A stretch of 63,503 nucleotides of DNA, filler included, from Octopus bimaculoides (lineage: Eukaryota), in NCBI RefSeq assembly GCF_001194135.2. It is 7 parts of 7 records of this genome, joined end to end, with 100 filler letters (N's around TTAATTAATTAA, not from the genome) between each part and the next. Parts side by side here need not be neighbours in the genome. Positions count along the whole stretch, not along the records: positions 1 to 16,987 come from NC_068993.1; 6 more parts are not named here. One strand, 5' to 3'. Below are positions 1 through 34,612 of this stretch, in pieces. Under the pieces are notes generated by a model. That model was not told where the DNA came from, made no database searches, and was given only the letters and a program-made list of their open reading frames with translations. The translations under genes and the position numbers were made by a program. Numbering within the stretch: position 1 is the stretch's first letter; every line of letters begins with the position of its first letter.

Positions 1-34
<34 letters not shown>

Positions 35-488
35 TTATGCGCACGTATGTATATATATATGTGTGTGTGGTTTGTGCATGTCTGTATACCTGAGTACATG
101 CGCGCGTGTATGTATGTGCACGTGTTTTTCTGTTTCTGTATGTCTCTCACCACTCAACAAGCGGTGATGGTTTGCTTATGTCCCCTTACGTAGCTATCCC
201 GCAAAACGAGACGAATGGAAAACGAGTCAAACTTATAAAGTGAGCGCCGCTGGGGCTGATTTGATTGGCCAAAACCCTCGATGACAATACTCCAGCATAA
301 CAACAATTCAATGACTGAAACAAGAATAAATAAAAAGAAAAGAAAAAGAAAAAGAATAAAAGAAAGTAAAAGAAGTGAAATGAGATTCTGTGATGTTCAT
401 GCTTTTATCCAGAGATCAAGCAACGTACGTATAAGGAAATAGCTAAAGCCGAAAATCGAGGCTAATACAAGGACACATCTCTCAAGAC

Positions 489-841
489 TAGTGGTTCTCA
501 ACCGGAGTCCGTATGACCCCTGGGGATCCATATAAAATTTCGGAGGGTTCCACGTAAGTAAAATAGTAAATTCGAGAGCTACAGTAATATATTCAGGTTC
601 CATGAAAAATAGTTACTTTAGAAATATTTATTGTAAAAAAAACAGCTCGGTTTTGTTTTTCTCTCTAATGTTTTACGCAGTTCAACCTATACAAGTGAAT
701 GTGTGATGAACAAAATAGGTATTTTGAAAGAGGTATCTATAAAATTAGTTTATAAACATCGAATGGCTATGGGGGGTCCACCAGAATAAAATAGTAATCA
801 AAGGGGTCCATAGATTAAAACAATATGGTTGAGATTCCCTG
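489..841. mobile_element. hAT-superfamily MITE (Charlie/Buster-like)
   Basis: Ends TAGTGGTTCTCAACC and revcomp CAGGGAATCTCAACC. Flanked by 8-bp imperfect TSD CTCAAGAC (481-488) / GTCTAGAC (842-849), matching the NTCTAGAN target of Charlie/Buster hATs. Internal GGGGTCC subterminal motifs. Confidence 0.8.
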
Positions 842-1051
842 GTCTAGACCTACTCTATACAACAGGGGGCATTAAAATTGTTATTGATCAAAGAAGAGAT
901 AAAAGATGGAAAATATAGATGGATATATTTGTTATTGATTTGTCAATGCACATGCGTGAGAGAGATAGAGGAAGAGAGAAAGAGAAGGGGAGAAAGCACA
1001 GAATCGTGTGTGTGTGTGTGTGTGTGTGTACAGTGCGCGCGTTTTACTTAC

Positions 1052-3248
1052 TTAGGTTCGATGTTCTTCGAGCTATTTTATTTCGAGCTTGTTGCCGGAA
1101 ATTACGGGAAGAATCGTCAGTCGAGGGTCGAACATCTGACCTCTGTCTCTGTGTGAAGGGCTTTACTGTTGACAACATCGACTGCTGTACGCGTTCCTGC
1201 CACCAAGGAAATGGTCCGTGATTATTCCTATTGAATGAATGACTTGGATTTATTTTTAACCGAGGCCAAACCACCGGAGCTTTCCAATCGAATTCTTTGA
1301 TTTGATCACTGAAGCCACTTTTTAGTTTCGGTAGAGGAACTGTGATGCTGTCTGTTATTCTGCCTTGTTCAGGATTTTTCTCGATCCAGAAACTATTTCT
1401 CGATGCCCTCAGTTTAATTTTGGTTTGAGGAGTTTGCTCTGGTCTTGTTCTGTGGTTGCTTCTTGAAGGTACAGTGTGTAGTTTGGTAAATATTTCAGCT
1501 CTGGATATTTTTCGTTCGGGTTCAGCGTTTGATTGCCGTTGCTCAGATTCCGGATAAGGATTTCTTCGTTCAGGCTCAGGGCGAAGATTTCTCTGCTTAT
1601 TTTCAGGGATTGAATTTGGGGGCTCAGACTCAGAAAATGGATTCCTTTGTTTAATCTCAGCAAACGGATTCTTTCGTTCAGGCTCAGGATGGAGATTTCT
1701 TCGTTCAGGCTCAGAAAATGGATTTTTTCGTTCGGGCTCAGGGCGAGAGTTCCTTCTTTCAGGCTCAGCATGTGAATTCTTTCGCTCAGGCTCAGAAAAT
1801 GAACTTTTTCGTTCGGGCTCAGGGCGAGAGTTCCTTCTTTCAGGCTCAGCATTCGAATTCTTTCGCTCAGGCTCAGAAAATGGATTCCTTCGCTCAGGTT
1901 CAGGATAAAGGTTCCTTTTTTCAGGCTCAGAAAATGGATTTTTTCGTTCGGGCTCAGGGCGAGAGTACCTTCTTTCAGGCTCAGCATGTGAATTCTTTCG
2001 CTCAGGCTCAAAAAATGAACTTTTTCGTTCGGGCTCAGGACGAAGGTTCCTTCGTTCAGGTTCAGCATTTGAATTCTTTCGCTCAGGTTCAGAAAATGGA
2101 TTCCTTCGCTCAGGCTCAGGGCGAGAGTTCCTCCTTTCAGGCTCAGCATGTGAATTCTTTCGCCGAGGCTCAGAAAATGGATTCCTTTGATCAGGCTCAG
2201 GATGATGGTTCCTTTTTTCAGGCTCAGAAAATGGATTTTTTCGTTCGGGCTCAGAAAATGGATTTCTTTGCGCAGGCTCAGGATGCGAGATCCTTCTTTC
2301 AGGCTCAGGATATGGATATCTTCGTTGAGGCTCGGAGTGTGGATTTTTTTGTCTTGTCTCATGATTTGCATATTTTTGCTGTAACTTTGGGATTGCAATT
2401 TTTCCTTCAGGTTTCAGGTAAGGACTCCTTAGTTCAAATTGGGAGTTTGCATTTCTTTGCTCGGCTGCAGGTTGTAACCTTCTTCTTTCAGGAGTTGAAG
2501 GCTCCGTTTCGGGCTGAGAGTACAAAGAAATCCTTATCGAATTCTCACTCAACCAACTGTTCTTTCGATTCCTTTTATCTACTTCAGATATTGGAAAAGT
2601 TCTTTGAATATTATCACCAGGAAATATTCTTGGAGATTTTACATTATGTACAACTTTTTCTCTTTTTGATTCTGTTCTTCCTGAATTTATTTTGTGATCT
2701 TTGTAAGGAATTAACCAGCCAGATTCTGAGAATCTTTGAATTGGATTAACACTTGGATAAATAATCCTTGTCCACGGTCTAGCACTGATTCCGTGAATTT
2801 CACTGGCAGTAAATCTTCTATCTCTTTTAGACATTGCCGGATTTGCAGCAGACGTTTTCCTTGGTTGTTGCGTATCACGTTTCACTCTGTTGCGTCTAAG
2901 AGACGTCCCTACAATACTGCGAAATGTTTCGATCGGTGGATCGGTGGGATAAACGATTCGCTTCGATTGAGTCTTTCGAAATCCAGAACTGACGTTTGGT
3001 GTGGCTGTCTCAACATCACTAATCAATATTTTTCGGAAATAATTTTTCGCATATTCTTTATCGCGGTTCGAGCTTCCGCTGCTGAGGTGATCAGACACTA
3101 CCTCAGTTCCCATTGCACTTGCTGTATGGACATCAATAAATGCAGTCGGCATATTATGTACGAGAGATCTGGTGGTTAACATGCTTGTAACAGATGTAAT
3201 GCATGTAGCTGTGGTTAGAAACCATAACACCGAGAACAAAAGATCCAT
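1052..3248 (-). CDS. First coding exon of a predicted secreted, low-complexity precursor with 31 x 9-aa EPE-dibasic repeats (family not recognised)
   Basis: Part of the 875-aa ORF 1044-3671. ATG at 3248 starts MDLLFSVLWFLTTATCITSVTS (hydrophobic signal-peptide-like). RRNRVKR furin motif (RVKR at 2888-2877). The ORF stays open for 2.2 kb in a repeat-rich AT-rich genome. Consensus donor GTAAGT at 1051-1046 (phase 1) lies just before the TAA at 1044. Codons upstream of 3248 are trinucleotide microsatellite. Confidence 0.8.
1509..2345 (-). repeat. 27-bp coding minisatellite, 31 units (NPFSEPERK/NSHAEPERR/NSRPEPERK variants)
   Basis: Units counted directly from the translation. First unit NPHSEPQRR starts at 2345, last full unit QSNAEPERK ends at 1509 (31 x 27 = 837 bp). 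Confidence 0.95.
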
Positions 3249-3339
3249 CCTTGCTCTCTTCAGCAACTGATTTAATTGTAAGTTACCTGTCCAGGTAAAT
3301 GTAATGGTAGGTAACAGCGTCGATATTTTGTTAGACAGT

Positions 3340-3602
3340 TTCGGTGGTAGGATGTAGTTGTGATGGCGGAAGTGGTGGTGGTGATGGCATGGTGACGGTG
3401 CTGATGGTGGTGGTGGTATGGTGACGGTGGTGCTGCTGCTAATAGTCGAAGTTGTAGTAGTGGTAGCAGTAGCAGCAGCAGTGTTCGTGGTGGTAGATAA
3501 AGCAGACGTGGTGGAAGTGACGGTGGTATCAGAGGTAGTAATATTGGTAGCGGTGGCAGCATAGGTATTAGTGTTGGCGGGAGTGATGACAATGGTGGGT
3601 AT

Positions 3603-3638
<36 letters not shown>

Positions 3639-3665
3639 ATGGTAGTAGTAGTAGTTGTAGTAAAT
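3340..3665. repeat. Compound (GGT)n/(AGT)n/(AGC)n trinucleotide microsatellite
   Basis: Visible directly. Explains the Y/H/T-rich N-terminal extension of the 1044-3671 ORF. Confidence 0.9.
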
Positions 3666-3986
3666 TTTCAAGATATTTTACTAATTCGACATACGTGAGA
3701 GAATATGTATCTGCGAATGTATTTGTATACGTACGGGAATGTTTAGACTTAATTCGTGTATATACGCGTGTAGGTATGTCTATATGTATCCTCGTATGAA
3801 TGTTTGCAAGTAGTTATGTCCATTCAGGTATATGTATGTATGTGTGTGTGTGTGTGTGTGTGCGTGCGTGTGTGTGTAAGTCATACTGCTGTATGTATGT
3901 ACAGGTAACTACCATTCGCTCGTATTAAGCGTTTTGCCAGGTGTGAAAAGGATTCTGCCAGCTCCCTACTTTAATAACAATAATAA

Positions 3987-4187
3987 TTTCAAATTTTTGC
4001 CACAAGGGCAGCTTGGAGGAGGTGGGGATGAATCGATTACATCGACCCCAGTGTTCAACTGGTATTCAATCGACCCTCGAAAGGATGAAACGAAAATTCG
4101 ACCTCGGGGGGAATTTGAACGCGGAACGGCAGACGAAATACTGCTAAGTATTTAGCCCGGCGTGCTACCGATTCTGCCAGTTCGCTG
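3987..4187 (-). mobile_element. tRNA-derived SINE, family A
   Basis: Revcomp gives the head (GAACTGGCAGAATCGGTAGCACGCCGGGC...GTTCAAATTC, A/B-box-like) and the shared core TTTCATCCTTTCGAGGGTCGAT. At least 10 related copies in the window. Confidence 0.9.
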
Positions 4188-4461
4188 CTTCAGTAATCCT
4201 TTCTATTCTAGGCACATATTCAGCTGTATTGTGTTCAGAATAAACGTTGGCACCCCCATTGCTTTCACACCACGTTAGACATCGCCTCACACTTTAGCAA
4301 TTCCACCACACATACGCATATTCACGCTCTGCATCGCATCCTTCTTACATATATACGGCCATCACTCATTATTTTTACGTGCCCATGCCAACGAGGGACC
4401 CTTTTCGTGGTCTCGACCTTTTCGCACCTCACAGTCGCAGAAAAAGGACACATTGTAAATA

Positions 4462-4678
4462 TGTGGGGGTGCTGAAAAGTTCCTGGCTTTAAGGGTGTCG
4501 CGAAAGGCCTGGCTGATGGCCTAATCTTCCGAGTTCTTCTACAGGACTTAGAAAAACTGAAGGACCGCTGCAATGAGTGTGTGAATCTGAGAGAGGAATA
4601 TGTTGGATAACATCAGAAGTAACTGATCCTCCTGTACTTTTTATTAACTAAAGCCAAGAACTTCTCAGCACTTCCTCG
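4462..4678 (+). mobile_element. Internally deleted mariner (MITE)
   Basis: TIRs TGTGGGGGTGCTGAAAAGTTCCTGGCTTT and revcomp CGAGGAAGTGCTGAGAAGTTCTTGGCTTT, flanked by TA on both sides. Interior retains a transposase-C-terminus-like KLKDRCNECVNLREEYVG*. Confidence 0.8.
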
Positions 4679-4898
4679 TAATTCTTGAGTTTTCTACGTA
4701 TAGGAAGAAAGCGAAATTGTCACGGTTGGAATGTCTTTGATCAAAGGTCTGCTCAATCGGGAACTGATCTGGGGTTAAACAACAATAATCTCGATACCCC
4801 ATAACACAGCACCATTCAAACCCCACCCCCACACGTAAACATACTTACCATTTCCCCTCACACACATCAACACGACCGCAACCAAATCACCACCATCA

Positions 4899-4935
<37 letters not shown>

Positions 4936-5009
4936 CACGCACACACACGCACGCACGCACACACGCATACACACATACACACTGCCAAGTTAATTAATTT
5001 TTCTCGCTT

Positions 5010-5242
5010 CCGCCACTACCACCACCAACACCAACCCCACCGCTACCACGTGCCACAATACGTATAGCTATGTGATGTCATTAAGATTTGATCATGAAAC
5101 TATTTCCTCCTACCAGCCAACACACCAACACACCAACACACCACTACCATCACCACCACCACCACCACCACCGCTACCGACGTTACCACCCCCATAATCA
5201 TCATCACGAGGATATATCACAATCAAAACCATCACCACCACT

Positions 5243-5288
<46 letters not shown>

Positions 5289-5770
5289 ACAGCACCTTCC
5301 ACCACCATTACCACCAGCAGCTGTTAAAAAGAGATATACTGTATAACAGGATGGTCAGAAGTGGAATGCCTTTGAGCATAGTTTTACTCAGAGTTCAACT
5401 GGTGGGGCTAAGCAACAACAACCACCACTACCCACTACTACCCAAATCTCATCATACTACTACCTACTACTACTACTATTACTACTATTACTACTACTAC
5501 CACGACGACGACCACCACCACCACTACCAGTACCTCTACTACTACTACTATTACTACTACTGCTACAAACATCACTATCACCGTCACACTAAATCTACTA
5601 CCACTACTACCACCACTATCATTACTACGACGATAACGACCACCACCACCATCGCCACCACCATCACAACCACCACCACACCTCTAATACCATCATCACT
5701 ACTACTGCTACTACTACCACCACCACCACCACCACCACTACTACTACTACTACTTACTCATATTACCTAA
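5010..5770. repeat. Compound (ACC)/(CAT)/(ACT) microsatellite field
   Basis: Direct inspection. Source of the poly-H/T/Y ORFs. Confidence 0.9.
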
Positions 5771-6099
5771 TTGCCATCAACGGGATCACGTGGTGATTCT
5801 TAATTACACGTTTGTCTCCGCAAACACGTATGTTTAATATTTAAACGACTTAATATATTTCCCTACCACAGATTCTATGTACATTGGCGGTGATTGTGCT
5901 AAACTTATTAAGGGGCAACACAGAAACTGGGTCACACACTGGGTCAATGATTGAAGTGGTAAGGGACAAAAAAAAAATGGTATTTGTTGCATTATATTTC
6001 GTCATTTTCGTTTCATGCCGTACCATGTTACTAATATGGCGGCTAATTAAATGACAGACAGTTGTTTAACCCGTGGGTAAACCCCACATCAAATCCCTG

Positions 6100-6250
6100 A
6101 TTAGTCTTTTATTTTTTTCATCTTTTAATTCATTAGACTGCGGCCATGCCTTGAAGAATTTTTAGTCGAATGAATCGATCCCAGAACATTTTTTTTTCTT
6201 TTCTTTAAAGCCTGATACTTATTCTATCGGTCTATTTTGCTGAACCGCTA
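6100..6250 (-). mobile_element. SINE family B, 3' half
   Basis: GACTGCGGCCATGC...TACTTATTCTATCGGTC...GAACCGCTA is the revcomp of the 3' half of the full copy at 7725-8175. Similar pieces at about 230-330, 18735-18800, 20880-21030, 36460-36628, 46230-46425 and 53595-53633. Confidence 0.8.
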
Positions 6251-6444
6251 TATATATATATATAGTGGGGACGACCACCATTCCTCCATGTAATCGGCTT
6301 TAAAATTTATTAAGACATTAAGATATTTTCTTGGCATGAAATCAATGGTAGCCTTAATACGTAAATAAAGAAATTTTATCCACCAGTGCGTTACTGAGCA
6401 CTTATTTTCATTGTTCAACATTTACACACACACACCACACATAC

Positions 6445-6483
<39 letters not shown>

Positions 6484-7724
6484 CTGACCGCCTACACTTT
6501 TTTCTGCAAAATAGGGGTAGCTTATCCTGTTCAGGCTATATTATTAGCATAATCCTGCGTTTGAGAATTTAAAATCACTTCTTTAACTTTCTAAAGACAT
6601 CTCAACGCCTCTAAAAGCAAACTTCGTTTGTTTGTTTACGCTCATTGTAATTTGAATTTTATATANNNNNNNNNNNNNNNNNNNNNNNNNNNNNNNNNNN
6701 NNNNNNNNNNNNNNNNNNNNNNNNNNNNNNNNNNNNNNNNNNNNNNNNNNNNNNNNNNNNNNNNNNNNNNNNNNNNNNNNNNNNNNNNNNNNNNNNNNNN
6801 NNNNNNNNNNNNNNNNNNNNNNNNNNNNNNNNNNNNNNNNNNNNNNNNNNNNNNNNNNNNNNNNNNNNNNNNNNNNNNNNNNNNNNNNNNNNNNNNNNNN
6901 NNNNNNNNNNNNNNNNNNNNNNNNNNNNNNNNNNNNNNNNNNNNNNNNNNNNNNNNNNNNNNNNNNNNNNNNNNNNNNNNNNNNNNNNNNNNNNNNNNNN
7001 NNNNNNNNNNNNNNNNNNNNNNNNNNNNNNGGTGGCGGCGGCAGTGGTGCTGGTGGTGGTGGTGCTGGTGCAGGTGCAGGTGCTGGTGCAGGTTTTGGTA
7101 CACTGGTCGGACGCAGGGGTAATTGTTGCAGCGGAAGTGATAATAGTTACGATTATTATGATTCGCAATCAGTAAATGGTATTTTTTTTTTTAATCTTCT
7201 TTCATCGTCAATATCTGAAAATAAAATAATTTCTAAAAAATTTTTTTAAATGATCTAAATTCAGTCCCCCCCCCCCATTACCATCCAGTTTCAAAATGAG
7301 TTCTGTTTTAGCTCTATTATTAATGATTGCATTATTCCATTATTCATGATTCCTTTATGATTCCATTATCCTATGATTCCTTATAATTCTTCTATGCCTT
7401 TATTCCATTCTTCTATCAATATTCTATTGTATAATTTTTGTTTGTTTCAATATTCTTGTTAGTGTGCTTGTAATGTTATTGGTATAAATACGGTTTGAAG
7501 AGAAAGGTATTGTTCCTCTCAAACACCGTATTGGTGCTACTGCTGCTACTGCTGCTACTGGCGTTGCTGCTGTTGTTGCAGCTGTTGCAGCCGTTGCTGC
7601 TGCTATTGTATGCTGCTGATTCCATTGTTGTTATTATCGATGCTAAACAATCTAAACCACTTCCCAAAAACTAGAACGTTAAATATATTAACATATTTTA
7701 AAGTTTTAGTCAGGAACACTTTCT

Positions 7725-8175
7725 CTTCCGAGGTATGGCTATGTGATTAAGAAGCTCACTTTGCAGCCACGTGGTTTCAGGTTCCGTTCCATTGCGCGGC
7801 ACCTTTGGCAAGTGTCTTCTACTAGAGCTCCGGGCTGACCAGTGTCTTGTGAGTGAATTTGACCGGTTCCATACGACGGGTTCCACACGACGGGTTCCAC
7901 ACGACGGTTTCCACACGACGGCTTCCGGACATAAACTGTTTGGAACCCGTCGTATAAACATGTGTTTGTGCCTCACCACCGCTTGACATTCGGTTTTGGT
8001 TTGTTTACGTTCCTGTAAATTATCGGTTCAGCAAAAGAAATCGTTGGAATAGAATAAGTGCCAGCCAGACTTTTTTGTAAAATAAGTATATCGCACGGTG
8101 TTCGATTTGTTCGACTAAAACTCTTCAAGGCGGTGCTCCAGCAAGGCCGCAATCCAACGACTAAAACAAACAAAC
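7725..8175 (+). mobile_element. tRNA-derived SINE, family B (CORE-like), near full length
   Basis: Head TGGCTATGTGATTAAGAAG...CAGGTTCCGTTCC, CORE-like GGCACCTTTGGCAAGTGTCTTCT, short TG-rich centre, tail ...GGCGGTGCTCCAGCAAGGCCGC...ACTAAAACAA. Other copies or heads at 9447-9760, 24361-24705, 24772-24935 and 43365-43490. Confidence 0.85.
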
Positions 8176-8864
8176 GGTAAACGAAGAAGGAAAAACTGGA
8201 GATGACCAAATACATTGAGCAGGAGGAGGAGGAGGAGGAGGTAAAGTACTAAGTAGCTGAGAATCTCTGAAGTAGAGGATTCTTCGTGGACAATTAGAGC
8301 TGTTGTTTAACATCAAGGCAGCAGTGTTTGAGCAGACCTATGATGAAAGCAGTCTAGCCGTAGCCATCCAGAATGACTTTCACGGGCTCTTTGAAATTGC
8401 AACGAAGAATTTATAACGCAAAAGAAAAGAAAAAGAACATCTGAAATGAGAAGATAACTCTTAGGTAACTCGTAGATTTGGTAGCGTGTTTGGTAATGCT
8501 CTTATTCAACAATATCAGTTATGGTTGTAAAAACGAAAGACCACAAGGAAAAACCTTCCTTTCACTATATGTATATAATCTGGTTTGAATAACGTTAAAT
8601 AGAGTGACTAAGCAAAAAGTGTTGAGTTCGGTCGAGCCACTAACAATTTTATTAAGTTTTAATTTAATGTAAATGGAAAGACCACACAGACACAGACACA
8701 CACACACACGCACACAGAATTTAGAGATGGTTTTTTTTTTTATTAGCGACGACGAAGTAGTTTTCTTAATATGCACAAAAAGTTAGACCAGTGTTTGGAC
8801 TAATGTAGCTGATGTCGCTTTTTTTGCTAAATGGGCATGCATAGAAATATGAATTATTCTAACT

Positions 8865-8906
<42 letters not shown>

Positions 8907-9024
8907 ACATTATATTATATTGTATTTTATAAGTATTTTATCTGTATATGTATGTATATATACTATGTACGTATGTGTTTATGTATGCATATATCTCACA
9001 CACATTATATTGTATATATTAAGA

Positions 9025-9078
<54 letters not shown>

Positions 9079-9446
9079 GTATATGTATATGTATGTATAT
9101 GTATATATATACAAATACATGTGTATGTATATATATGCATGAATGTATAAATGCATATACATGAGTGTATGTATGTGTGTATGTATATATCCATGTATGC
9201 ATACATGCATGTATGTATGTATGTACGTACGTATATGTATGTATGTATGTATGTATGAAGATTTTAATCAATAAATTACATCAATAACTTAATGATGACA
9301 CTTTGAATGTGTTTTATAATTGTTTGTTTTTATATTCTTTATTACGCTTCTACTTATCGTGTTTATATTTTCTCATTATTTTCGTAACGTTTTTATTTTA
9401 TTAGTTTTGCATTTTTTAAGTACTTCTTACGATTATTTATATATTT

Positions 9447-9600
9447 GTTGGCTGTGTGGTTAAGAAACACGCTTTGAAATCGCATGGTTTCAGGTTCAGT
9501 CCCACTGCATGGTACTTTGAGCAAATGTCTTCTACTGTAACCCTAGGGTGGCTAATGTCTTGTGAGTGATTACGGTCGACAGAAACTGTGTGGAAGCCTG

Positions 9601-9660
<60 letters not shown>

Positions 9661-9760
9661 TTTCTTCCACCGCTTGAAAACCAGTGTTGGTTTATTTACG
9701 TTCCCATAGTTCAGTGATTCTGCAAAAAGAAACCAATAAATAAAGTTTAAATAGATAAGT
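9447..9760 (+). mobile_element. SINE family B with internal (TG)n microsatellite
   Basis: Head TGGCTGTGTGGTTAAG...GGTTCAGTCCC, then (TG)n at about 9605-9657, then CCACCGCTTGAAAACC...GCAAAAAGAAACCAATA tail. Confidence 0.8.
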
Positions 9761-9769
9761 AAATAATCT

Positions 9770-10180
9770 TTTCAGTTATAGGTACGAGGCCTGAAATTTT
9801 GAGGAAGGGGTCTACTCTATATACACCGACCCCAGCTGTGTTCAACTGGTATTTGTTTCATCGACCCAGAAAGAATGAAAGGCAAAGTTAATTTTGGCGG
9901 AATTTCTACTCAGAGCGTAAAGACGGACGAAAGCTGCTAAGCATTTTGTCCAGCATGCTAGCCTGCCAATAATAAGAATAACCCTTTTTTATTTTGGCAT
10001 AAGGCCAGCAACTTTTAAGGGTGGGGAAGTCGATTACATCGAACCCAGTGCGTCCCTGGTATTCATTTTATTGACCACGAAAGGATGAAAATCAAAATCG
10101 TCCTTGGCGTAATTTGTACTCAGAATATAAAGTCGGGTGAAATGCCACTAAGCATTTTATCCGGCGTGCTAAGCTCGCCA
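9770..10180 (-). mobile_element. Two tandem family-A SINEs
   Basis: Two consecutive copies (9770-9967, 9990-10180), each with the GAAAG(G/A)ATGAAA core and GCTAAGCATTT, separated by short (AAT)n. Confidence 0.85.
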
Positions 10181-11138
10181 ATAATAATAATTATTATTGT
10201 TACATTTGCGTAGGCTTTTTACATGTTATATTATTTACCTAATTTCACAAGAATCATTCTTCTTTCAAACAAAGGACCAAGTACGCCTATCGAACTCAAC
10301 CCGGCTACTTATGTTGTAATTCTGAAACACTGGAACTGTGTGTGGGTAGCGTTACACGATAGCAACAACCACAAGACACAAAGGATAAATATTAAAAAAA
10401 AAATATTTCTGATATTCAATACATTCATACGTTCCACCAAATGGATTACTTGGTGGAACATTGCCATCAAAAATACCTCCAAATGCAATCACAATAGATC
10501 TGACTGTTGTTTACAACAGAAGGCAAAATTTGTGCGTTGTCCAGCGGATATGAGTATTTCATTGAAAATCAATGAAAAAAAATGAGAACATTTATTGATA
10601 AATGCTGCTCAACCAAGATTATAAATTTACACTTATACCTATAATAATAATAATGAACTCACTTTAAAGACGGCGTGCTGGTAGAACCGTTACCGCTCCG
10701 GCAAAGGTACTTAACAACATCTCGTTCGTCTTCACGTTCAAATTTCGTCAGCGTTGCTTTTCGGAATCGCCGGCCTAGCTTGACAAAATTTCTTACTGGT
10801 GCAATAGTTTACCTTAACCCTTCGTGGTCCGTCGGGGTTGGAATTACACAAGAGGCCATTGGGGGTCTCTTTTTATTTTTAGTTATGCTAGAAGGCACAT
10901 CCCCAAGATGCTGGGAAGTTGGACTGAACTCGAAACCTCGGTGTTGCAAAGCGATCTTCATAACCACAAAGCATGTCAAAATTTATATTATTATTATTAT
11001 TATATATGAGTAAAGACCACACACTCAAAAAACCTAATAATCGAAGCAACCAAAGTTTAAAGCAAAGGTTAAATGCTTAAAATAGCTGCATAAATTATGG
11101 TAATTGTTTTAAAATTTGTGATGAGCAATCAAATATTA

Positions 11139-11284
11139 CCGTATTTTAACGTGTATAAGAAACCCTTTTTTGTCAAAAATTAGGTTTAAAAAATGTGGTT
11201 GTTTTTTTATACAAGGATAGTATTATAATCCCTTACATAACCTTTTTTTTCCAAATTTTAAGCCATTAAGGGGTTAAAATACGG
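11139..11284. mobile_element. pogo/Tigger-like MITE
   Basis: Perfect 16-bp inverted repeat ATTACCGTATTTTAAC (11135-11150) / GTTAAAATACGGTAAT (11273-11288), including TA at each end. Confidence 0.75.
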
Positions 11285-25960: not shown

Positions 25961-26897
25961 GGTGAGAGAGACAGACAGAGACAGAGAGGAAACAGAGAAT
26001 GAGAAACGCATTAAAACGTCTACTGTCAAACAAGTCAGCTTTGAATGAGCGATTGCAAATGGACGACGCCAAAACGTTTGTGCCAAAACGACTCACACCT
26101 TATCAAATATAGCCATTTCGCCTGTTCGTGTCTGTTAGTGATGCTGATATATATATGTTTGTTTTCTGTCTCCACAGTAATATCTTCTTGCCAGTAATTC
26201 CTTCACTTTGGTAACAGAATATTCCTGTGTTCCTGTATTTACCAAATCTGATTCCAAACTCCACTTCACGAACCCCAAAATAACAATGTCAGTTATGTAT
26301 CATTTTGCTTTGCACTTTTTTTACTCTTTTTTACATTTCTTTTTTGTTTTTTTTACGTTCTTCCATTTAGTATTTTGGGTGAATATTTCACAGGTTCTTC
26401 TATACCTTGCCTTTTCATGAAACCGCACTTTATTCACTGCGCAACCCCGACTCAGTAAACACACACACACACACACACACACAAATACACCCCCCACACA
26501 CACACACACACACAAATACACAAATACACACACACACACATATATATATGTATACATACATATATACGTTTCCACACGCCCGTACACACACTTATATACA
26601 GACACGCAAACATACATACACCCATATATACACCCCTACACGCATATATATGTAGATATAAATATATAGAGAGAGAAAGGGAGACGGAGAGAGGGGAAGA
26701 GTACAAACACACACATACACACACATATATATACACGCACATTTATGTACACGCGCTCACACACACACGCACACATATATATTATATATATATATATNNN
26801 NNNNNNNNNNNNNNNNNNNNNNNNNNNNNNNNNNNNNNNNNTTAATTAATTAANNNNNNNNNNNNNNNNNNNNNNNNNNNNNNNNNNNNNNNNNNNN

Positions 26898-30066: not shown

Positions 30067-32047
30067 TATAGTACGGTACTTTGATACGTATAGTATTCAT
30101 ATCTTCTAAGGTGAATATAAAACGTGAACTTCAGTAGGTTTTTAATCACCATTTTTTAAATATCGATTCAAATATTGCCGAAAGAATTACGAATATTTTT
30201 GCAGCAGATGAATTTTCGTATTCACTACAAGACATAGCACTTAAGAAATAAGGCAGGAAAAATATTCAACACTGGAATAGTTTTTTCATTAAGTCTAAAA
30301 TCTTCTTCGTGCGTGGGTGTAGGAATATTTTGCTAAGTTGAAAAATAGTTTACTCGGAGTAAATTATTTAGCAGCAGGAAATATTTCTCGAGGGAAGACA
30401 ACACACCTAAGCAACTTCCGAATATTTGTGAAAAGATTTCTATTGTGAATTATCGTCAGATATCTTGAAATAATTATATCATCTCATAGTTACACAACTC
30501 ACGAATATTTAGTTGTGCTTACTATGGGGTGAATATCAAAAGGAATACGCATAGCCAAGAGTATGAAGCATGATGTGAATGGAAAAAAGGAAAGTCGGCG
30601 AAGTTGAGATTTGAAATTGGAGCATCAAATAATGTAAATAAAAAAATTATACATTGTCTATCTTATTAAAATTACGGACACTCCGGATAATCAAGAAAAA
30701 GCAAAACAAGACGGGATGGTCCTAGTTAAAGAAATTTGATCGAGAGTTTACTCAATCAACGCTGACACGTTCGTAAGGAGGAAAGTAGCATAAGAAACAA
30801 CAGGTGCGGGTGTTCATACAGACACTACACTACGAAAACGAATAACAATTTCAAACTTAGTAGTGTGCGAACTACGAGAAGCCATCAACGCGTACTAGAT
30901 TCTTGTAGGAGCAACATCCGATAAAGTGTTCCACTCTACATGCCTTCATAGTATAGTTAAACTAGTTTGTTGCCTTTGCCATAGTATATCTCTATGACTG
31001 TGATTTAAATATGTTCACACGCATTTCATTTCCATTGCATTAAAAATTATATTTGTCTCTGTAATCTCCTACTTGGAACCTACTCCAATCACACACACAC
31101 AAACTTGTATATTACATATACTTATACATATATACATAGATACATATACATATTACACACACACACACACACACACATATTCTTCAGTCATACAATTTCC
31201 CCTCATTTCTTCATCCACAATATAACCGCACTAACCCCAATCTTCCATTCATTTCCCATTTCTAACTGGCAGCCTTCGTTTATTCTGAAAACGTCTTTAA
31301 GCACTCGGAATCCTACTTCTCTCCGTTTCGCACACCACAGCAAAAATAAAATAATATAAAATTATTAATAAAAAATATACAAAATGAAGCATTATACATA
31401 ATAAAGATAGAGTAAATGTAACTGACTGACATAATTGAAACATCGTTATCGTCTTGACGAGTATCCCCCCTCTCTCTCTTTCTGTCCCTATATTAACTAC
31501 CTCTTTCATTCTTACGTGATTATCTAATTTACTTTAAGTTGCCATTACATAACGTCCAGCCAAATTTACTTGGCTTCTGTTCCATTCATTTTGGCTTCTT
31601 ACTCCATATTTCACTGAAATTTTCAATTTATCAAATGCAGGCCTAATCGAAGAATATTCAGTTCAAACAAAACCACTTAATGGATTTGAAAATCTCTGCT
31701 TTAGAAACAGTATTGACGGATAACGAAATTATCCAGAATTATCTTCTCTGCACATGCCACATTGTTCGTTCTTTGATTCGCACCCAATCCGCACCCGCTT
31801 TACTTCCCATTATATTTCCATTGCACACCAGAGTTGCTATCTTTTCGTTACAAGCAAGAACTATTGATTCCAGTTCACTAAGTCTCAGGTTTGCGGCCTA
31901 GCAGAAATAGGATGTTGTGGAATTCTTGCCTTTCTCAAAGAGATCGAAGAAAAACGGAACAGAGATGCATTTTTTTAATAATTCATCATTATCAGGATTT
32001 GGTTCGTCATAACATTTCCTAGCTTTTTTCTTCCATTCGCCTTTGAT

Positions 32048-32658: not shown

Positions 32659-34612
32659 TGTATGTATGTATATGTGTGTCTGTGCGTGTGAATATATTAT
32701 ATGTGCGCAAAATATTAATGTGTCTGCGTGTATGCGTGTGTCTTTGTCTGCCTGTGATTATGTGTGTGAATGTATAGCTGCATACAATTCATGGGATACA
32801 TTTCAAGACAATAGTTATCTCGATTTAAGCCCATATTCATATAAAACTGTAAAATGCAGCAGTGTTCACCAGCATTCACAGCATATACTGCTATAGCAGA
32901 AGAAACTTAACCATCTTCTCACACCGTCTCCAATCAAGGGATATAATAAATATCCTGGAAACAGTTGTAAGACCTACTTATAAATGTTCTATAATGTACA
33001 CAGCCTTGGTTTTTTATCTCATTACGAAAAGTAAATCCATATATATATATCAGGAAGATAGGTTTTGTGCAGGCAAAATGTAAATTATTCTAATGAAGAC
33101 GTGGGTCTATTGTGGCCTAATATTATACAGAGCAAACCAAAGAAGAGAAAAAAAAATTATGATGAAAATAACCAGAAAAGTCGTTAGTTTATGCAATATG
33201 TTAATCATACGAAATAGTTTAAATATAATATTTTCGTTAGATTTGATATTTGTTGAAAAAAATACGATGAACTGCTGATTTTCTGTTGTGAAAATCATCT
33301 CAAATANNNNNNNNNNACAGCCTTGGTTTTTTATCTCATTACGAAAAGTAAATCCATATATATATATCAGGAAGATAGGTTTTGTGCAGGCAAAATGTAA
33401 ATTATTCTAATGAAGACGTGGGTCTATTGTGGCCTAATATTATACAGAGCAAACCAAAGAAGAGAAAAAAAAATTATGATGAAAATAACCAGAAAAGTCG
33501 TTAGTTTATGCAATATGTTAATCATACGAAATAGTTTAAATATAATATTTTCGTTAGATTTGATATTTGTTGAAAAAAATACGATGAACTGCTGATTTTC
33601 TGTTGTGAAAATCATCTCAAATAGTTTCTGGTAACAAATAGGCACTACCATTTCAAGTACCTGTAGCTACTACATTTAAACATTACTGCATTTTCTCAAT
33701 TTTCCCCAAACTCCGAATTGTTTCACTTAGGTATTTGAACCTGATTAAGCATATTGTTATAAGAGTGTTTAATAAACATCTACTAGATTTTTAAACGTTA
33801 AGTCATATATTAACTGAAATTTTCTAAACATGTTACATAAACTTTTCCTCATTGATCATTGCTACAGACTAGTTTTCAATAGTGGAATGCCGTTGTACAA
33901 TATAAATGAAGGATAACTCGCAAGTCACTCAGTTAAGGGAGGCTATGTATACAAATAGTAATTCTAATGAATGCTCACTCGAACAGACATGCACTTCCGG
34001 AGCAATAATATGAAGAAGAAATTAGTTCACCTAGAATGACTCACTGCAATGGCATGGAAGAAAGTAGATTTGAGCAAGTTACTTCGGCCGCGAAAATCAT
34101 TTAGAGGCAGAAAAATAGCTAACAAAAAAGAAAAAAACATTACAGATTTATATTTACCTCTTAAGAGAGCATGAAGGTAAATAGATAAATAGATCGACAT
34201 AGTTACACTTTCGTCTTTTAAACCTAACTAACTTAGCAGGAGTATGTTTATGCATGGTAAACTTACATTATAATTTATTCATGACCTTAGAATATATTAT
34301 AAATTACTTTTCAGTTTCATGCTGCACCAGCAAATCCATTCCTTTTAAAACAGAGAAACAAACAAGCAGATAAATACCTATGATTAAAAGCCAGAAACAA
34401 AATGATAAAACTATATAAATTCATAAAAATCTATATAGGAAGCAAATCCATTCTGCAAAATGTAAACTGCAGGAAATATAATCTAATTCTAATATATACA
34501 CAACGCAGGCACATACACGCATCTATCATACACACTCACACGGATACAACAAATATACATACATGCATTAACATTCACATATACACACATATACATATAT
34601 ATTTACACACAC

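Follow-up and report, generated by a model that had tools for sequence, protein, structure and literature searches.

The window analysed here is a stretch of 63,503 nucleotides (nt) of Octopus bimaculoides DNA (NCBI RefSeq assembly GCF_001194135.2) made of seven parts joined end to end, and its first part (positions 1 to 16,987, from NC_068993.1; the 17-kb piece below) carries on the minus strand a long open reading frame, 3248..1052, whose 732 codons represent the exon part only. The product of this frame starts MDLLFSVLWFLTTATCITSVTS, and its signal-like N-terminus is followed by about 710 Cys-free residues, with a composition rich in Arg, Pro, Ser and Glu (R 13%, P 12%, S 11%, E 11%), a net charge of about +47 and a regular array of nine-residue units in which hydrophobic residues make up 9%. 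The frame is very probably exon 1 of a divergent octopus homologue of stanniocalcin (STC), as suggested by the Cys framework and the intron positions of its orthologue in Octopus sinensis. As a whole explanation, to which a probability of about 0.55 is given, exon 1 would encode the signal peptide and the disordered, cleavage-site-rich pro-region of this STC homologue, and the precursor would be processed by convertases. A preliminary description of the frame had proposed an unrecognised, secreted-type coding sequence with regularly spaced dibasic sites; this is borne out, with no annotated protein covering residues 1-690, but its reading as a self-contained polyprotein precursor gives way to that of the first coding exon of an STC-type gene.

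Both ends of the exon can be placed (Table 1). The minus strand gives 734 stop-free residues from 3248 to 1047, and a TAA comes next at 1046-1044. The last exon bases are AAC CTA A and are followed by GT AAG TAA, so that a consensus GTAAGT splice donor lies right after base 1052 and closes the frame; the TAA overlaps this donor and is therefore probably intronic. At the other end, the frame is also open for 141 codons 5' of the ATG, up to 3671, across a TAC/ACC/ACT microsatellite (3249-3671) read as poly-Tyr, poly-His and poly-Thr, which is a mechanical and non-coding extension of the open frame. A 2-nt indel relative to O. sinensis lies 22 nt upstream of the ATG, with the N-terminal coding indels being +6 and -3, and together with the upstream microsatellite it makes 3248 the most likely start of translation. 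From base composition, the non-repeat flanks of the array would be open by chance with P ~1e-9 for 299 codons and 2e-4 for 145 codons.

Table 1. Features of the exon and the adjoining intron in the 17-kb piece, numbered along the window
Feature	Positions	Strand	Basis
Start codon, AGGATGG context	3246..3248	-	First ATG ahead of the hydrophobic N-terminus
Signal-peptide-like segment, residues 1-23 (MDLLFSVLWFLTTATCITSVTSM), with the sole Cys	3180..3248	-	52% hydrophobic, no basic residue, read by eye
Non-repeat, Cys-free, basic-cluster-rich region, residues 24-299	2352..3179	-	Sequence read, O. sinensis comparison
RVKR, furin-type R-X-K-R motif, residues 121-124	2877..2888	-	Read from sequence; conserved in O. 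sinensis
32 nine-residue units, consensus R-[RK]-N-[PS]-x-x-E-P-E, residues 300-587	1488..2351	-	In-register unit list
Higher-order 216-nt repeat (8 units), 2.8 copies, 84% identity	1656..2254	-	Tandem Repeats Finder
Conserved, dibasic-poor segment leading into the STC domain, residues 588-732	1053..1487	-	O. sinensis comparison
Exon end (a split Arg codon opens at 1052) and GTAAGT donor 1051-1046	1046..1052	-	Same CTAA/GTAAGT used in the O. sinensis model
Start of intron 1	1..1045	-	Exon 2 past the edge of the piece

The continuation of the gene is seen in O. sinensis, from which the piece diverges by about 5-6% in coding sequence. Searched exhaustively with phmmer, 1.84 billion representative proteins yielded 81 that match the charged repeat only and a single one (P0012) that matches unique sequence. 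This protein, XP_036363976.1, is annotated as 'uncharacterized protein LOC118765724' and has 216 residues; its residues 1-42 match residues 691-732 of the octopus product at 93% identity, and it continues RAERCAMLVARGDC for 174 more residues with ten Cys, starting RAERC. The orthologous exon is at 8011-10132 of the 36-kb O. sinensis locus (L001), where the CTAA/GTAAGT donor joins ...TTCAACAG/GG (CAACAG/GG), giving L-R-A-E-R-C with Arg as the split codon. The downstream exons of this locus are 12479-12639, 12794-13047 and 26010-26115, with two more GT-AG introns between them. Positions 755-203 and 197-16 of the piece align to 11000-11541 and 11809-11986 of the same locus, and with O. sinensis exon 2 beginning at 12479, exon 2 is expected about 0.5 kb beyond base 1. 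A tblastn search with the STC domain found no STC-domain exon in the piece, as expected from an exon 2 beyond its edge. Two shifts of frame interrupt the repeat in the O. sinensis assembly (near 9210-9225 and 9422), the parts being read in frames 1, 3 and 2, and XP_036363976.1 starts at an internal Met (residue 691 here) downstream of these breaks, lacks a signal peptide and is almost certainly truncated. Each of the three frame pieces, translated separately, still reads the same nonapeptides, which suggests isolated errors in an A-rich repeat or very recent changes or decay. Other searches added nothing: no family was found by Pfam in the exon product, a word-index search with the full product gave 8000 candidates of which none was significant (probably saturated by repeat words), and an exact-sequence look-up in public assemblies returned no record; by word-index, exact look-up and phmmer searches alike, no annotated protein was found for residues 1-690. 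A word-index search with XP_036363976.1 retrieved only itself, no mention of the O. sinensis accessions was found in the literature, and Rfam and tRNA scans of the piece gave no match.

The case for stanniocalcin is built on the Cys framework and the intron positions, and not on alignment scores. The human STC1 sequence used as reference agreed with STC1 entries in the database at 98-99% identity and also matched the STC2 chains of the PDB, and Nannospalax STC1 (L002) and Myotis STC2 (L003) provided the vertebrate introns. Successive Cys spacings are 8, 4, 6, 14, 23, 15, 24, 7 and 36 in the product of O. sinensis exons 2-4, and 8, 4, 5, 8, 23, 15, 13, 6 and 34 in human STC1. This near-identical spacing is rarely equalled: with the eight inner Cys placed at random, 9 of 1.6e7 trials match as well (p ~5e-7), and so do 32 of the 362,880 permutations of the observed spacings (p = 8.8e-5). 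The C4-C5 loop has 14 residues versus 8, exactly six more, with FAFNVG within the extra stretch, and a six-residue hydrophobic region between C4 and C5 is common to non-vertebrate STC homologues (Roch and Sherwood 2011, PMC5654410), so this longer loop is also a likeness to the family. It is the ten-Cys pattern, and not sequence identity (13-37% between lineages), that marks family members (PMC5654410). Moreover, octopus and STC share an FD-x3-K-x-[FY]-[VL]-[KR] motif, equally far from C6 in both. The three introns have phases 1, 0 and 2 in the octopus gene as in the stanniocalcins: intron 1 lies 4 residues before C1 in octopus and 5 in STC1 and STC2, that is, one residue off, whereas intron 2 (after FD-x-x, exactly 10 residues before C6) and intron 3 (in the codon 12 residues before C10) are at the same positions in octopus, STC1 and STC2. 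Three matching phases and two identical positions are very unlikely to occur by chance. As in the family (STC1/STC2, PF03298; non-vertebrate homologues, PMC5654410), the first exon of the octopus gene would carry the signal peptide and the residues ahead of C1. It differs in size: vertebrate exon 1 encodes the signal peptide and a short pre-C1 stretch in about 40 (STC1) or 50 (STC2) codons compared with about 732 here, and the full octopus protein is predicted to have about 906 residues (732 from exon 1 and 174 from exons 2-4) versus the 150-300 typical of the family. The 732-codon exon would thus be an STC first exon expanded about 18-fold. Unlike stanniocalcins, the octopus gene has a tandem nonapeptide array in its giant pro-region and no profile-level similarity, and it lacks both the 11th (dimerisation) Cys and a sequon for N-glycosylation where vertebrate STCs have theirs. 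The earlier statement that no Cys follows the signal peptide holds for this exon only and fails for the gene, whose orthologue continues into the ten-Cys domain.

The frame 3248..1052 appears to be translated now, or to have been so until recently, as indicated by several features of the sequence. A ten-Cys secreted-type domain needs entry into the endoplasmic reticulum (ER) and the sole signal peptide on offer is at residue 1, which argues for coding over the full frame. The exon is 94-96% identical between the two octopus species, compared with 76-89% for flanking intron and intergenic DNA, and the first 299 codons hold in-frame indels only. Among the repeat units, the ratio of nonsynonymous to synonymous differences per site (pN/pS) is 0.42 in the claimed frame, the lowest of the six (0.69-1.15 in the other five), with synonymous differences near saturation (pS 0.53). 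Relative to O. sinensis, residues 588-690 have a pN/pS of 0.18 (Fisher p = 7e-4) and lie upstream of the annotated O. sinensis start, and nucleotide identity over 1053..1487 is 95.6%. Two further frames are open across the array, 1409-2398 on the minus strand (329 aa) and 1718-2749 on the plus strand (343 aa); these were rejected as coding candidates, with no reach into unique sequence and a pN/pS of about 1, and are by-products of a stop-free repeat unit. There are also 25 Arg codons in the exon that read CGA, one CpG transition from TGA or CAA. Several of them read CAA (Gln) at the aligned O. sinensis units and none reads TGA, a pattern consistent with selection against stops while single dibasic sites drift.

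Within the N-terminal segment, the signal-like stretch is built around a hydrophobic core of nine residues (LLFSVLWFL), after which come small polar residues, but lacks a positively charged n-region; it differs from O. sinensis by one substitution, and the sole Cys of the exon (C16) lies within it. Residues 24-299 are 93.7% identical in nucleotides to O. sinensis, compared with the 76-89% of flanking non-coding DNA, and hold 13 dibasic pairs versus 8.5 expected from shuffles, in the direction of enrichment (p = 0.055). All five basic clusters of this region (RRNRVKR, KRDR, SKR, DKRNRK and ERRR) are kept in O. sinensis, and the furin site given in the preliminary description is indeed present among them. 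Amino-acid constraint on residues 1-299 nevertheless seems weak.

The array that follows was described earlier as 31 units; its nine-residue regularity is confirmed but the in-register count is 32, and 25 of these do carry a dibasic pair, as had been claimed, which in this register is at the start of the unit (12 RR, 11 RK, 2 KR). All five heptamer counts given at the time are also exact (NPFSEPE six, NSHAEPE three, NSRPEPE three, NSNAEPE two and NLRPEPE two). Tandem Repeats Finder places an array with a 27-nt period at 1624-2333, with 26.3 copies and higher-order periods of 81, 162 and 216 nt; the 216-nt repeat is the youngest part of the array, and the length difference between the two species falls in its zone. 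The 26 dibasic pairs of the repeat exceed the 14.9 of composition-preserving shuffles (p = 3e-4, enriched). Within the unit, R/K2 and E7 never vary and P8 and N3 hardly do; conservation is highest at the junction E-P-E-R-[RK]-N and lowest at positions 4-6, and R or K at positions 1-2 is kept through synonymous or conservative codon changes (CGA, AGA, AGG, AAA, AAG). No Gly precedes a dibasic pair (G-[KR][KR], the amidation signal) anywhere in the exon product, in agreement with the preliminary description, and the repeat peptides have no pyroglutamate-type N-terminus and no Cys. That description had also named dibasic pairs unconserved in orthologues as an observation that would speak against it, and conservation is partial: the O. 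sinensis array has 29 units of which 18 start with a dibasic pair, and across aligned units sites have been gained and lost between the species (QR, QN, QK, LK). Between-species pN/pS is 0.91 at one alignable end of the array and 0.48 at the other, and the last dibasic site common to both species is RK579-580. Outside the exon, the repeat motif was found in neither the 17-kb piece nor the 36-kb O. sinensis locus, and an origin of the array from a dispersed satellite or transposon was rejected because of this confinement at both loci. The four commonest heptamers are not mentioned in the searchable literature.

Residues 588-726 contain 0 dibasic pairs versus 4.7 expected from shuffles, a significant depletion (p = 0.0024). 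A loosely evolving, Cys-free and dibasic-rich N-terminal two-thirds, followed by a dibasic-free, constrained segment at the folded domain, fits a convertase-processed pro-region, the processing being inferred from this distribution. In the favoured explanation, the signal peptide would take the precursor of about 906 residues into the ER, where the C-terminal domain would form five disulfides and the disordered N-terminal two-thirds would act as an oversized pro-region. Enzymes of the furin or prohormone-convertase type would cut at RVKR, at the KR and RR clusters and at many of the repeat junctions, and the retained product would be the STC-like domain, probably with the conserved dibasic-free residues 581-732. 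Acidic fragments of 7 to 16 residues would be by-products or, at most, accessory products, and the array, only loosely constrained, would have grown by recent unequal exchange. Vertebrate STC1 is a prepro-protein with a short pro-segment that is encoded by exon 1 and removed at a basic site, and the octopus dibasic layout parallels this prepro organisation.

Several results weigh against this explanation, both in the homology and in the processing. Pfam (PF03298) gave no match to the downstream domain even at E <= 10, hhalign against STC1 plus STC2 gave E = 0.21, and a hidden Markov model of 120 vertebrate STC sequences ranked the domain 387th of 2001 when compared with shuffles. Pairwise BLASTP to STC reached E = 0.046 at best, with C1-C6 aligned, and a single-sequence AlphaFold2 model of the O. 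sinensis protein was all-helical but too poor for comparing folds, with a predicted local distance difference test score (pLDDT) of 44.7; Foldseek found no PDB match to it at E < 1. The STC exons are seen only in the O. sinensis orthologue, outside the DNA examined here, and in that assembly the STC domain is not in the reading frame of the signal peptide. The cleavage step is wholly inferred. The RR at 727-728, which immediately precedes the STC domain, corresponds to QR in O. sinensis, and the pN/pS of residues 1-299 (0.78) is indistinguishable from neutrality (1). RK is the least-used dibasic type and a poor convertase site, and it makes up 11 of the 25 repeat sites. In addition, a PDB sequence search with the domain gave chance-level matches only, and a homologue search with the STC1 plus STC2 profile had only vertebrate STCs among the matches listed.

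Whether the dibasic sites are used at all is what separates the favoured explanation from a serious rival, which is possible but falls well short of probable: the Cys-free region might remain uncleaved on the STC-like domain as a charged polyampholyte arm (+47) that could, for example, attach to polyanionic matrix or mucus or determine how far the domain reaches, and the dibasic periodicity would then be a property of the duplicated unit. The charged composition and low hydrophobic content of the repeat, the between-species repeat pN/pS of 0.5-0.9, the different copy numbers and the turnover of dibasic sites are all compatible with such a spacer. The 81 proteins from the phmmer search are unrelated and share only an EPER-type charged repeat, several with a nine-residue period, which argues that arrays of this kind often arise as low-complexity spacers. 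Among unrelated proteins with EPER/EPEK-core repeats are P0024, P0053 and P0003 (RRMSIVEPE, EPERKAPVI and SEKEPERSK), and their likeness looks like convergent low-complexity architecture and not homology. However, a disordered, exposed chain with RVKR and more than 35 dibasic pairs is expected to be cut in the secretory pathway, synonymous changes preserve R/K at unit positions 1-2, and the depletion of dibasic pairs exactly in the constrained sequence is hard to explain if the pairs are without consequence. The preliminary description had offered two options, and a charged, disordered segment of a larger secreted protein comes closer than a polyprotein of acidic heptapeptides. A true multi-copy peptide precursor, with NPFSEPE, NSHAEPE, NSRPEPE and the other acidic repeat peptides as selected bioactive products beside the STC-like protein, is doubtful. 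It would account for the putative signal peptide, the dibasic flanks of 25 of the 32 units, the low among-unit pN/pS with near-saturated synonymous differences, and the invariant or nearly invariant R/K2, E7, P8 and N3, but it is the junction that is best conserved and the middle of the peptide (positions 4-6) that varies most. The RK sites, the 11 of 29 O. sinensis units without a dibasic start, the differing unit number and the missing maturation features (amidation Gly, Cys, pyroglutamate-type N-terminus) also speak against it, as does the absence of the peptides from the searchable literature. Equally doubtful is a dual-output precursor, in which one gene would yield an STC-like protein and, from the recently amplified pro-region array, acidic peptides of 7 to 16 residues acting as secreted effectors. 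If true, these peptides might serve as hormones or, should the gene be expressed in the venom-producing salivary gland like the canonical octopus STC mimics, act on prey; a peptide family would then have been built in a new way, by repeats expanding in tandem within the pro-segment of an ancient hormone gene.

The remaining alternatives deny the frame either its translation or its secretion. It is unlikely that only a short protein from the residue-691 Met is made and that the sequence upstream is a decaying remnant or a 5' leader. The two frame changes in the O. sinensis repeat, the NCBI model starting downstream of them, the pN/pS of residues 1-299 and the lack of any predicted protein over residues 1-690 would agree with such a relic, but the short model would then have no signal peptide on a ten-Cys secreted-type domain, and the pN/pS of 0.18 is found at residues upstream of that Met. 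All 732 codons are intact although about 5% of single substitutions would make a stop, the N-terminal indels are multiples of three, unlike the first one found upstream of the ATG, and the three O. sinensis frame pieces read the same nonapeptides, as isolated 1-nt errors in A-rich runs would leave them. NPF is an EH-domain-binding motif and R-R-x-S a basophilic-kinase site. NPF occurs in about ten units with acidic residues after it, and RRNS, RKNS and RKSS fit R-R-x-S, so that an intracellular scaffold with repeated EH-domain and kinase sites could be imagined; a cytosolic protein is made very unlikely by the signal-like, hydrophobic N-terminus and by the orthologue's ten-Cys domain, with its homology to a secreted hormone. 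A granin-like acidic protein was rejected from the net charge of +47.

Compared with known systems, the exon resembles multi-copy neuropeptide precursors (FMRFamide-type, pro-TRH, proenkephalin) in having a signal peptide and then short dibasic-separated units. Unlike these, its acidic units abut without spacers, no amidation Gly is present and RK accounts for 11 of the 25 sites; conservation is stronger at the junction than in the core, congeners show turnover of both units and sites, and a Cys-rich, hormone-like domain follows. The likeness would be a functional analogy only, two defining features (conservation of sites and core, maturation signals) having failed. Precursors of Cys-rich peptides and toxins, and granin-type substrates, have a signal peptide, a Cys-free, dibasic-rich pro-region and a Cys-rich C-terminal product. 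With these the octopus precursor shares a functional layout without homology, and its pro-region is longer, repetitive and net basic versus the acidic granins. A further comparison is with the STC-like 'doppelganger toxins' that form superfamily SF5 in the posterior salivary glands of octopuses, described from O. bimaculoides and Hapalochlaena maculosa, which are BLAST-detectable and have a normal architecture (bioRxiv 10.64898/2026.02.02.703354). Both would be cephalopod STC members, but the gene described here falls below usual BLAST thresholds and has a 700-residue insertion; the SF5 toxins are probably different paralogues.

Stanniocalcins are ancient secreted proteins, described as compact (150-300 residues), and the function, receptors and processing of the non-vertebrate members are poorly understood. 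If the roughly 18-fold growth of exon 1 is true, the STC pro-segment can be remodelled into a polyprotein-like, Cys-free repeat region dense in convertase sites. An annotation gap is also apparent, as the sole public gene model is the 216-residue 'uncharacterized protein' without a signal peptide, and the large exon is covered by none. With octopus STC-like proteins proposed as prey-directed venom-gland mimics, it becomes a concrete, testable question where this divergent paralogue is expressed and how it is processed.

Around the exon, two runs of N, at 6666-7030 (365 bases) and 13734-13802 (69 bases), are scaffold gaps in the piece. Dispersed repeats with 70-79% identity pair 7736-7856 with 9449-9569 and, in inverted orientation, 9838-9932 with 15820-15914, and further copies are at 3926-4188, 9764-10172 and 15752-15987. 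They also match the O. sinensis locus (for example at 6770-7152, 30501-30726, 33556-33716 and 34470-34674 of L001) and are probably interspersed elements of the short interspersed nuclear element (SINE) type. Microsatellites (CA, TA, TAC/ACC, TAGA, TGTA) are very dense on both sides of the exon, at 4870-5770, 8868-9257, 12855-12925, 13444-14109 and 16525-16987, and several are found at matching intron positions in O. sinensis, such as a TCTA run in intron 2 (L001 12650-12750).

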